64,000 nt of DNA from Podarcis filfolensis (Eukaryota): the NCBI GenBank assembly GCA_964270895.1, contig OZ185443.1; one strand, written 5' to 3'. Positions 51,383 through 58,376 of the stretch are shown one piece after another (within the stretch, counting starts at the first letter, position 1; every line of letters begins with the position of its first letter). Under the pieces are notes generated by a model that was given only the letters and a program-made list of their open reading frames with translations, ran no database searches and was not told where the DNA came from. The position numbers and the translations under genes are program-made.

Positions 51383-51386
<4 letters not shown>

Positions 51387-51430
<44 letters not shown>
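51387..51430. repeat. (GT)n microsatellite
   Basis: Seen directly. Confidence 0.97.
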
Positions 51431-51432
<2 letters not shown>

Positions 51433-51828
51433 GTGTTACTGGTAGCCACACTATACTGTAACATTTATGGACTCTATAAAATCTTACATTGTTGTGGTCT
51501 TTCCTCAGAAGAGCTTTATGCCAGACAGCATGAAAGTTTCATGCTAAACTCGTCTGTGGCCAAAGTCATTCAGAAGAATTCTGCACCTGAGTTGCCTTAA
51601 TATAGGACAACCTGCAGCTTTGCAGAGACCTTCCCCTGTAGCTGCCCTTTCAGGTGGAGACAGATGTGCAATTTTAAATTGTGGTAGGATTGAACACACA
51701 CATCTTGCATTCCAAGGCATTTGTTTTCAGCCAGAGGAGGGATTCCAAAATGGCTCCCCGTCATGGCATGCACAGTGACCCACCATAAGCTCATGATTCT
51801 CCACAAGTATAACCCAGGTGCCAAAAAT

Positions 51829-52181
51829 CATCATCAACCTTTATTACGGTCCAGAGACCCAACAAATCGTCACAAAGCAATACACAATTCATACAGCCTA
51901 CCTCCAGGTTAAACAAGCATTTCGTTCAGAATATAGGGATCATTGGTTCTTGTAACCACTGATAAAAACTTGGCCACTGCTAATGTTCTAGCATTTGTCC
52001 GCTCTTCCAATAGGAACCTGATATAGTGAGCCTCTGATTTTCCCGGGAAAGGTACCAGCAAGGGTAATATCAGTTCAGCCCTGGTTTGCTCATATTTTGC
52101 ACAGTGCAACAAAATACGTTCTATGGAATCGATGTCTTGAGCACACGAGCAAAGTCTGTCCTGGTAGGGAACTCCTCTCAA
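51829..52181 (-). mobile_element. LINE 3' fragment with C-terminal CCHC-like knuckle (clade uncertain, RTE-X-like)
   Basis: RGVPYQDRLCSCAQDIDSIERILLHC...LLEERTNARTLAVAKFL. AATAAA plus (TGA)n tail on the minus strand. 8-bp TSD CCAAAAAT (51821-51828 and 52182-52189). Confidence 0.72.
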
Positions 52182-52427
52182 CCAAAAATGCTGATTACCA
52201 GGCAGCACTCAGCTGTGTACATCACCTAAGGTCATAAGAAACTCACTTTTAGCTCACAGCATTCATTTTGGTCCCTAACAGAGGAGTCCTAATGCAGCAA
52301 AGGTTTGGGTGTGAGCCCCACCGGTGAAAGTACATGTCTAGGAATTCACCCACCACACTCTCTCCTTTTCTGGCAGCCATTGCAGCCCCCATGGGGATAC
52401 AGCTAAAAATGGTATCACCATGGTTAT

Positions 52428-52536
52428 CAACATCACCAGGTATCTGAAGAAGTGTGCATGCACACGAAAGCTCATACCAATAACAAACTTAGTTGGTCTT
52501 TAAGGTGCTACTGGAAGGAATTTTTTTGTTTTGTTT
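52428..52536 (+). mobile_element. Penelope-like element terminal (pseudo-LTR) fragment
   Basis: CTGAAGAAGTGTGCATGCACACGAAAGCTCATACC...TTAGTTGGTCTTTAAGGTGCTACTGG matches, from memory, the terminal repeat of reptile Penelope-like elements. Confidence 0.7.
52439..52478 (+). ncRNA. Minimal type I hammerhead ribozyme motif
   Basis: GGTAT-CTGAAGA-A-GTGTG(CATG)CACAC-GAAA-GC-TC/ATACC contains stem I, the CUGANGA box, stem II, the GAAA box, a palindromic AGCT stem III and a CUC cleavage triplet. Confidence 0.7.
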
Positions 52537-52977
52537 CTTCCTCATAATGTTTAGAAATCCTCAATCACTTTGTGAGTTCCTCCATCTCAGTTACTGTCAG
52601 CCAACAAAGAGGAGCAGGGTTAGGGAAAGTTGCAATATGTTGACCATGAGTAATGATGGGCATTGTTTGAGGAGTTGCACATCTACTGGCAGTTGTCCAT
52701 GTGGCTGGTTTCATTGCATGCATGTTCATTACTTGACTGCAATATCAAGTGACGACATGCCTGGGGGACGGGTCCTCACAGATCTAACCCCACACACTGA
52801 ACTTTCATTCCTTCCTTCTCAACACTTTTAATGTAGCGCTTTTCACACAAAGTTTGCACACTCAGCCACTAACCTTTGACTGCTTAACACTCAAGTGTAC
52901 AGGAAACCCAAGTTCCCGCCAATTACCCTTGGCACATCCAACGCACACTCTGAGAACAGCTGGTGTATTCAGTAACT

Positions 52978-53212
52978 TCTAAAATGTCTGCAAGGTAGGG
53001 TACAGCCACCTTTACATGCCCCAGGGACATTCAAAGCACTCAGCCTTCCAGAAGTCCACTGAAGCTTCATAGTTATCATGGCACCAGTTACAAAGTGTAG
53101 TTGTTGAACCAGCATTTAGGTATGGGGGAGTCTACTGTGTTTTGCCTGATTAAAAAAAAATTTTTTTTTTTTTTTGCTTAGTTAAGAATGGCTTTCTCGG
53201 AGACACTACCTT
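52978..53212 (+). repeat. Direct repeat copy A (duplicate of 53439-53648)
   Basis: TCTAAAATGTCTGCA...CTCGGAGACACTACCTT aligns end to end with 53439-53648, with about 10 substitutions and small indels. Confidence 0.95.
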
Positions 53213-53348
53213 TAGGCATAGGCAACCTTCGGCCCTCCAGATGTTTTGGACTACAATTCCCATCATCCCTGACAACTGGTCCTGTTAGCTAGGAAACATG
53301 GGAGTTGTAAGCCAAAACATCTGGAGGGCCGAAGGTTGCCTATGCCTA
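53213..53348. mobile_element. hAT-type palindromic MITE (family of 7164)
   Basis: TAGGCATAGGCAACCTTCGGCCCTCCAGATGTTTTGG ... CCAAAACATCTGGAGGGCCGAAGGTTGCCTATGCCTA. A second right-end fragment lies at 53395-53437. Confidence 0.9.
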
Positions 53349-53438
53349 AAGGTAGGGTCTCTGAGAAAGCCATTCTTAACCAAGAAAAAACATCTGTAGA
53401 CCAAAACATCTGGAGGGCCGAAGGTTGCCTATGCCTGC

Positions 53439-53648
53439 TCTAAAATGTCTGCAGGTAGGGTACATGCCCCAGGGACATTCAAAGCACTCAGCCTACCAGA
53501 AGTTCACTGAAGCTTCATAGTTATCAAGGCATCAGTTACGAACTGTAGTTGTTGAACCAGCATTTAGGTATGGGGGAGTCTACTGTGTTTTGCCTGATGT
53601 TTTTTGTTTTGCTTGGTTAAGAATGGCTTTCTCGGAGACCCTACCTTT
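53439..53648 (+). repeat. Direct repeat copy A' abutting the PCDH7 3' splice site region
   Basis: Aligns with 52978-53212 and ends 31 nt before the exon. Confidence 0.95.
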
Positions 53649-53679: not shown

Positions 53680-53872
53680 CCATTTCGTAGAGTGACGTTT
53701 TCAGTTGTGAGTCAGCCTCAGGACCCACATCAAGGGTCATTGCAGAGTTGCTATGACAGCGGTCTGGAGGAGTCAGAAACACCAAGCAGTAAGAGTTCTT
53801 CAGGGCCGCGGCTGGGTGCCCTTCCACTCCCAGAGGACAACTACGAAAGGACTACGCCGGATGGCAGTGTTG
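53680..53872 (+). CDS. PCDH7: PCDH7 exon, short-donor form (lacks GEAEHMEN)
   Basis: Internal donor TTG|GTGAGG 24 nt upstream keeps phase 1 (193 nt). It would give ...GSV-D..., as in a recalled mammalian long isoform. Confidence 0.7.
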
Positions 53873-53896
53873 GTGAGGCAGAGCATATGGAAAATG
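53680..53896 (+). CDS. PCDH7: Protocadherin-7 internal coding exon (cytoplasmic tail with RRVTF PP1-binding motif), long-donor form
   Basis: Translates as PFRRVTFSVVSQPQDPHQGSLQSCYDSGLEESETPSSKSSSGPRLGALPLPEDNYERTTPDGSVGEAEHMEN, matching the PCDH7 tail as I recall it and distinct from PCDH1 (HRRVTFSATSQ). The exon is 217 nt, phase 0 to phase 1, bounded by CAG| and G|GTAGGG. Confidence 0.95.
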
Positions 53897-58129: not shown

Positions 58130-58376
58130 NNNNNNNNNNNNNNNNNNNNNNNNNNNNNNNNNNNNNNNNNNNNNNNNNNNNNNNNNNNNNNNNNNNNNNN
58201 NNNNNNNNNNNNNNNNNNNNNNNNNNNNNNNNNNNNNNNNNNNNNNNNNNNNNNNNNNNNNNNNNNNNNNNNNNNNNNNNNNNNNNNNNNNNNNNNNNNN
58301 NNNNNNNNNNNNNNNNNNNNNNNNNNNNNNNNNNNNNNNNNNNNNNNNNNNNNNNNNNNNNNNNNNNNNNNNNNNN
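58130..58376. other. Assembly gap (247 N)
   Basis: Run of N seen directly. Confidence 0.99.

Follow-up and report, generated by a model that had tools for sequence, protein, structure and literature searches.

A minimal hammerhead motif in a candidate lizard protocadherin intron is very probably part of an abundant Penelope-type short retroelement

A minimal type I hammerhead motif in an intron of a putative protocadherin gene is, very probably, the 5′ part of a solitary copy of an abundant Penelope-type short retroelement. This copy, about 98 bp in length, occupies 52440–52537 on the + strand of the 64-kb stretch of lizard DNA analyzed here (the window), and its insertion is shared with related species. 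The family to which it belongs would carry a minimal hammerhead typical of Penelope-like elements (PLEs) and of their non-autonomous derivatives (pLTR modules and non-LTR retrozymes), and the copy would have entered the protocadherin intron ahead of the divergence of the four lizard species sampled. The hammerhead sequence would be intact because it still matches the common sequence of the family, not through use by the host, and it should not cleave the host pre-mRNA meaningfully.

The family's hammerhead and its conserved 3′ box would belong to the element's own RNA. Two roles have been published for such modules, which the family may share: weak processing, for which a dimer or the protein of the element is needed, and a position adjoining reverse-transcription start sites. 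The location in a protocadherin intron is, most simply, incidental. Hammerhead-bearing short retroelements of the Penelope-like or retrozyme kind have already been described, and the site is an ordinary relic, one of tens of thousands of equivalent copies. It is chiefly of value for annotation: in this genome, motifs of the kind should be masked, as Penelope-type repeat modules, before intronic hammerheads are treated as features of the host.

The hammerhead motif

The motif spans 52439–52478 on the + strand and was recognized by sequence inspection, folding, and a descriptor search. All type I hammerhead elements occur in the order given by a preliminary description of this DNA, with which the sequence agrees exactly. 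A stem I of 5 bp (52439–43 paired with 52474–78) is followed by CUGAAGA, corresponding to C3 through A9 (52444–50), and by one extra A after A9 (52451). The stem II hairpin, of 5 bp with a CAUG loop, is a perfect 14-nt palindrome (52452–65) that was also recovered as an inverted self-BLAST match, and its closing pair is G10.1-C11.1 (G52452-C52465). G12 to A14 (52466–68), then A15.1, G15.2, C16.2, and U16.1 (52469–72), and finally C17 (52473), after which cleavage is predicted, were assigned by inspection of the sequence, as were the elements before stem II. Stem III is AGCU alone, loopless and palindromic. Stems I and II constitute the minimum-energy structure of the monomer (−10.1 kcal/mol, RNAfold).

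The first nucleotide of the motif, G52439, may belong to the flank and not to the repeated unit, since other copies lose similarity at 52439–52441. In the unique flank at 52410–52444, TGGTATCACCA and TGGTTATCAACATCACCA precede the GGTATC of the unit, and TGGTAT (52410–15) could pair with ATACCA (52474–79) as an alternative stem I. Depth is slightly raised in the bin 52403–52433.

The repeated unit

Four species labels or more have DNA runs that contain the region 52000–53000. Contigs from the DNA of three of them, the related species B, C, and D, were aligned to 52000–52900 at 80% likeness, as were raw RNA reads of species D. Contig depth and orthologous contigs of the three species define a single-copy intronic flank upstream (52186–52438) and another downstream (52538–52900), in which depth is flat at 12.7, 90, and 11.4 in the three species (52186–52433 and 52558–52900). 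Between them, at 52434–52557, summed depth climbs to about 1.6e6, 5.6e6, and 1.6e6, respectively. This means that the unit lies about 1e4 to 1e5 times above its flanks in all three species, a ratio that derives from contigs and does not equal true copy number. Thousands of separate contigs per run cover the unit, with 1,400 to 2,500 per run at least 99% alike. The depth ratio and the thousands of contigs leave no doubt that the segment 52440–52537 is highly repeated.

Contig depth and loose ends delimit the unit at 52440–52537 (+), in which the hammerhead is followed by a conserved 3′ box and a T-rich end. Similarity among the other copies stops at 52439–52441 on the left and at 52515 (most copies), 52527, or 52533–52537 (a subset) on the right, and the local unit is therefore about 76–98 bp long. 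The 3′ box (52477–52515), recognized by depth, family variants, and the fold in context, is the deepest-covered part of the family. It could form an ACCAA...TTGGT hairpin with an A/C-rich loop (52477–52496), which is followed by a GGTCTTTAAGGTGCTACTGGA-type box. The T-rich end (52516–52537) is variable, as loose ends in contigs and RNA show. The 5′ hammerhead half is covered at about half the depth of 52465–52495, which fits 5′ truncation of a + strand retroelement. Among the positions listed as differing in at least 10% of copies are 52481, 52485, 52500, and 52528; none of those listed falls in the interior of the hammerhead.

The family takes several forms elsewhere. The sharp border at 52440 was rejected as a family-wide 5′ end, because alignments must stop where the window copy ends, and a subset of other copies has a conserved upstream extension. 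Opposite-strand joints at 52439–52442 indicate a head-to-head arrangement. Other joints lead from 52512–52537 back to 52438–52445 with few letters between, and these apparently represent head-to-tail neighbors. There is also a long form, in which the unit is embedded in conserved sequence on both sides (flank agreement of 0.77–0.88 among RNA reads). In a subset of copies the T-rich end runs into a conserved continuation, with loose ends behind 52533, 52536, and 52537 that agree up to 0.88 in RNA. The family is very abundant and expressed, with many near-identical copies in solo, inverted, apparently tandem, and long forms, and it could suit the study of how PLEs and their short derivatives amplify in squamates.

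The copy in the window is solitary. Mismatch-tolerant patterns and the hammerhead descriptor found no second copy of the unit in the 64 kb, nor did BLAST of 51800–52900 against the window, and a pattern search of the window gave no trace of the 3′ continuation of the long form. No target-site duplication was seen by eye around 52440/52537. Exact patterns of the hammerhead and the 3′ box had no match in metagenome and viral contig collections, and a full-text literature search found no paper containing the sequence of the 3′ box.

Many unit copies, including most expressed ones, sit inside the longer form in the same and related genomes. In that form, the unit is immediately preceded by conserved ...CTTCTGTTTCAGT, which looks like a 3′ splice site, and conserved GACTAYGGCAGACCAACACGGCTACC... 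follows the T-rich end. Penelope of Drosophila virilis has an intron whose end coincides with the 5′ edge of helix I (PMC4209133).

Age of the insertion

An orthologous-site comparison, as the preliminary description had proposed, places the insertion in all three related species. On the left, the flank contigs of B, C, and D run into the repeat as far as 52462/52463; on the right, their contigs start within the repeat at 52509/52521. Since the unique flanks enter the repeat from both sides in each species, the insertion is common to all four. The flanks diverge from the window by about 0.8–2.9% in B and C and by 2.5–4.6% in D. All differences in the left-hand contigs (13, 9, and 9) lie outside 52439–52462, so that the first 24 nt of the motif at its 5′ end are identical in the four species; the contigs break inside the repeat, which limits the comparison to this 5′ part of the motif. 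Less than one change would be expected in 24 nt at such divergence, and this identity therefore says nothing about constraint.

At 52251, 52322, 52330, 52399, and 52417, species B, C, and D share the same difference from the window. These five differences are probably changes on the lineage of the window itself, and they fit its species being either the derived one or the outlier of the four.

Relationship to Penelope-like elements and retrozymes

The minimal hammerheads of PLEs were defined by Cervera & de la Pena 2014 (PMC4209133). They have a long helix II and a helix I of 4–5 bp without a defined loop, and they occur mostly as single, dispersed elements in hosts that include reptiles (turtle, snakes) (PMC4209133). 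Several hallmarks beyond the descriptor argue against chance in their case: consensus families within a genome, a nucleotide that separates position 9 from position 10.1, a conserved G10.1-C11.1 pair, and a palindromic 15.2-16.2 (PMC4209133).

Each of these features is found at the window locus. The conserved core (C3 U4 G5 A6 N7 G8 A9 ... G12 A13 A14 A15.1 ... U16.1 H17) is complete and in type I order, the unpaired A52451 lies between A9 and the G10.1-C11.1 pair, and helix III is reduced to the core with its palindromic 15.2-16.2 (AGCU, 52469–72). Helix II is likewise long and helix I short, and contig depth places the motif in a large genomic consensus family. The earlier classification of the motif as a minimal hammerhead of Penelope type, with a stem III that is palindromic and loopless, is thus supported, both by an architecture that is that of PMC4209133 and by the motif's place in a huge repeat family. 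Like the metazoan PLE hammerheads, which share its type I order, intact core, extra nucleotide between A9 and 10.1, G10.1-C11.1 pair, long helix II, open helix I of 4–5 bp, and loopless palindromic helix III, it exists in thousands of mostly solitary copies per genome. The window locus differs from them in that no reverse transcriptase or GIY-YIG ORF and no second pLTR adjoins the unit, and the neighboring sequence is single-copy intron. From the architecture and the literature, we infer a link between the unit and PLEs.

Non-LTR retrozymes (de la Pena et al. 2020, PMC7229834; Li et al. 2026, bioRxiv 10.64898/2026.07.22.740005) are likewise short, non-autonomous units that bear a hammerhead and are akin to PLE pLTRs. 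They occur in tandem arrays and as many dispersed monomers, often intronic, and the window locus corresponds to such a monomer, with no array. Consensus lengths of PLE-derived retrozymes start at 51 bp, their monomers are distributed evenly over the chromosomes, and in Xenopus introns hold about 43% of retrozyme copies (bioRxiv 10.64898/2026.07.22.740005). Non-LTR retrozymes are recognized by at least two head-to-tail units at a locus, whereas the 64-kb window holds a single copy, and head-to-tail copies of its family are deduced only from joints.

In squamates, the closest comparison is with the Poseidon element PAc of Anolis carolinensis, whose hammerhead requires the protein of the element in order to cleave (Frangieh et al. 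2024, PMC11167929). Hammerhead mutants of PAc leave insertion unaffected, and no RNA-seq reads begin or end at its cut site (PMC11167929). Downstream of its hammerhead, PAc has two neighboring internal sites at which reverse transcription starts; the 3′ ends of inserts coincide with these, and they bracket an optional 'tail' (PMC11167929). In both systems, a sense-strand hammerhead is involved, which in PAc lies just upstream of the reverse-transcription start region (PMC11167929). The two end sites of PAc can be likened, by description, to the breaks in similarity at 52515 and 52533–37 in the window family, and by this analogy the breaks may be the counterpart of the two start sites. PAc differs in that its ORF starts in stem II, its cut site lies 26 nt after the ATG, and its protein is needed.

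A search with the Rfam hammerhead models, proposed earlier as a check, failed to detect the motif. The models Hammerhead_1, _3, _II, HH9, and HH10 had no match at the gathering score in the whole window, and no hammerhead matched at E<=10 in 52000–53000. Possibly, this failure reflects models that score a helix III with a loop, which the motif does not have. The only Rfam matches, two snoRNA-like ones (E 3.4 and 4.4), were rejected as chance noise; the spurious one to snoZ185 is produced by the pairing of TGGTAT (52410–15) with ATACCA (52474–79).

Conserved intronic hammerheads of amniotes (Rfam Hammerhead_HH9/HH10) were reportedly described by de la Pena & Garcia-Robles in 2010. These are single-copy, deeply conserved, full-size hammerheads with a stable helix III and loop-loop contacts. 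Like them, the window motif is a hammerhead on the sense strand of a host gene's intron; unlike them, it is multi-copy, lineage-restricted, minimal, and unmatched by the HH9/HH10 models.

It is unlikely that the unit is instead a non-autonomous element with no direct descent from PLEs, such as a SINE moved by a LINE, that carries or mimics a hammerhead-like sequence. The silence of the Rfam models would suit such an element, as would the T-rich end, the long form with its other conserved sequence, and a Penelope link drawn from architecture and literature. However, the motif has every published hallmark of PLE minimal hammerheads, the head-to-head and apparent head-to-tail arrangements match the habits of PLEs and retrozymes (PMC6765202), and the non-LTR retrozymes of vertebrates are themselves reported as PLE derivatives (bioRxiv 10.64898/2026.07.22.740005).

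Cleavage of the host transcript

In published work, a single motif of the PLE type gave no detectable cleavage in vitro, and dimers and trimers were weakly active (PMC4209133), a picture that the review PMC6765202 also summarizes. Dimer cleavage of such motifs was reported by Lunse, Weinberg & Breaker 2017, as that review cites it (PMC6765202). This agrees with the earlier statement that Penelope-like hammerheads with a palindromic stem III cleave mainly as dimers. The accompanying expectation that a lone copy would be a poor monomer is also supported, in that the PLE-type architecture and the published lack of cleavage by single motifs (PMC4209133) predict a poor or dead one. Helix III of the monomer consists of 2 bp closed by no loop and thus cannot form, so that a lone monomer should not cleave the pre-mRNA to a meaningful extent; we infer that the motif is inactive at the protocadherin locus.

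The preliminary description went on to suggest that a partner in trans, either RNA of the family or a second nascent transcript, completes the lone motif in the intron, and that the resulting double hammerhead conditionally cleaves the pre-mRNA after C52473. If true, this would make a transposon ribozyme into a conditional switch on a neural adhesion gene. The proposal is very improbable and is left unsupported here: energetics, RNA ends, and published biochemistry count against it. In its favor, two copies could build a helix III of 4 bp from their palindromic AGCU, folding predicts stems I and II, the RNA run is rich in family RNAs (depth of about 900 reads), and dimeric cleavage of such motifs has been published, though as weak (PMC4209133; Lunse et al., as cited in PMC6765202).

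Folding predictions point the other way. In the model of the double hammerhead, the two molecules exchange strands in stem I, each keeps its own stem II, and AGCU pairs with AGCU as helix III. By ViennaRNA, this active dimer reaches −17.7 kcal/mol, compared to −20.2 for two free monomers, while an inactive duplex of the palindromic stem II reaches −37.2 kcal/mol and takes essentially all of the ensemble. Intermolecular AGCU pairs have a predicted probability of 0.0. The active dimer is therefore predicted to be disfavored. Folded in its genomic context, the motif has stem I (P about 0.3) and stem II (P about 0.9) at about 1 kcal/mol or less from the minimum energy, with competing pairing between 52439–50 and the 3′ box at 52497–52509. 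Since stems I and II are predicted to form, the core would not be grossly misfolded and may retain residual activity. All of these energies are equilibrium nearest-neighbor estimates, which ignore tertiary contacts, proteins, and folding kinetics.

RNA reads likewise give no sign of cleavage. The 1,327 aligned reads all fall on the two repeats of the stretch and none on the unique flanks. This means that the intron is not detectably transcribed in the sample and that other copies are the source of the reads. The two first-mate orientations occur at equal frequency. Over the unit, at a depth of about 900 reads, no position emerges as a start or end of molecules. Among the roughly 1,300 family-level reads, which give zero coverage of the locus itself, there is no pile-up of read ends at 52473/52474. 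The test applies at the family level to one sample of species D, with a threshold of five reads and a fifth of the local depth, and misses cleavage below about a fifth of molecules; the result thus argues against efficient cleavage in expressed family members, while a minor cleaved fraction is possible.

Further points weigh against completion in trans. A cis partner is absent within 64 kb, and even cis dimers cleave very slowly in vitro (PMC4209133). Anole RNA-seq shows no ends at the cut site (PMC11167929). Moreover, the copies number in the tens of thousands and many are intronic, so that a trans mechanism that worked effectively would harm the transcriptome as a whole. A related scheme, by analogy with the protein-assisted hammerhead of anole Poseidon, is speculative and equally improbable: solitary sense copies might become cleavage-competent only with the protein of the family or with very abundant family RNA, so that bursts of Penelope-element expression would nick host pre-mRNAs at thousands of intronic sites, the protocadherin intron included.

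Specificity of the motif

The descriptor used for minimal hammerheads asks for a stem I of 4 bp or more, then CUGANGA and an extra base that may be absent, a stem II that is likewise 4 bp or longer, GAAA, Watson-Crick pairing of 15.2 with 16.2, and finally U and H. It has one match on both strands of the 64-kb window, at 52439–52478. The bare core pattern is at chance level in the window (17 observed versus 9.85 expected), and the specificity of the motif therefore comes from its stems and palindromic stem III. That unique intron sequence matches the hammerhead consensus by chance, which the loose core pattern taken by itself would allow, is negligibly likely, given 0.005 full-descriptor matches per window in 400 dinucleotide-preserving shuffles, and is ruled out by repeat depth over the motif in the contigs of three species, the motif lying inside a repeat whose summed depth exceeds that of single-copy sequence by a factor of 1e4 to 1e5.

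The host gene and neighboring sequence

The host gene is represented by an exon at 53680–53896 on the + strand, identified by ORF translation and splice sites, which encodes PFRRVTFSVV... of delta-1 protocadherin CM3 type. A pyrimidine tract and a cag| acceptor precede it at 53680, and a |gtagg donor follows 53896. The strand of this exon places the hammerhead motif in sense orientation to the gene, and the earlier placement of the motif 1.2 kb upstream of an RRVTF exon, sense to the gene, is correct. RRVTF is the PP1-alpha-binding CM3 motif of long PCDH7 isoforms (bioRxiv 10.1101/2021.09.21.460794), and by this published motif the host gene is a candidate PCDH7. Pfam and the protein atlas were uninformative for the exon peptide, and neither gave a gene name. 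The gene context comes from this one exon, in a window with assembly gaps at 2387–2567 and 58130–58376.

Other repeats lie nearby. A complex duplication and inversion (53013–53648) sits directly against the splice acceptor at 53680. It includes a 138-nt direct repeat (53013–53150 and 53461–53598, 96%), inverted arms of 100 nt (53171–53270 and 53291–53390), and a 49-nt direct repeat that ends at 53648. Upstream of the unit, an ORF of 99 aa (51909–52208, − strand) has a C...C...H...C pattern and no Pfam match, and its nearest protein-atlas clusters (0.92–0.94) include zf-RVT-type proteins. Summed depth over 52000–52185 is about 1e3 times the single-copy level in three species. This ORF is probably the C-terminal end of a 5′-truncated LINE ORF2 and stops some 250 bp upstream of the unit. 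Farther upstream, a (GT)n microsatellite of about 45 nt occupies 51386–51430.
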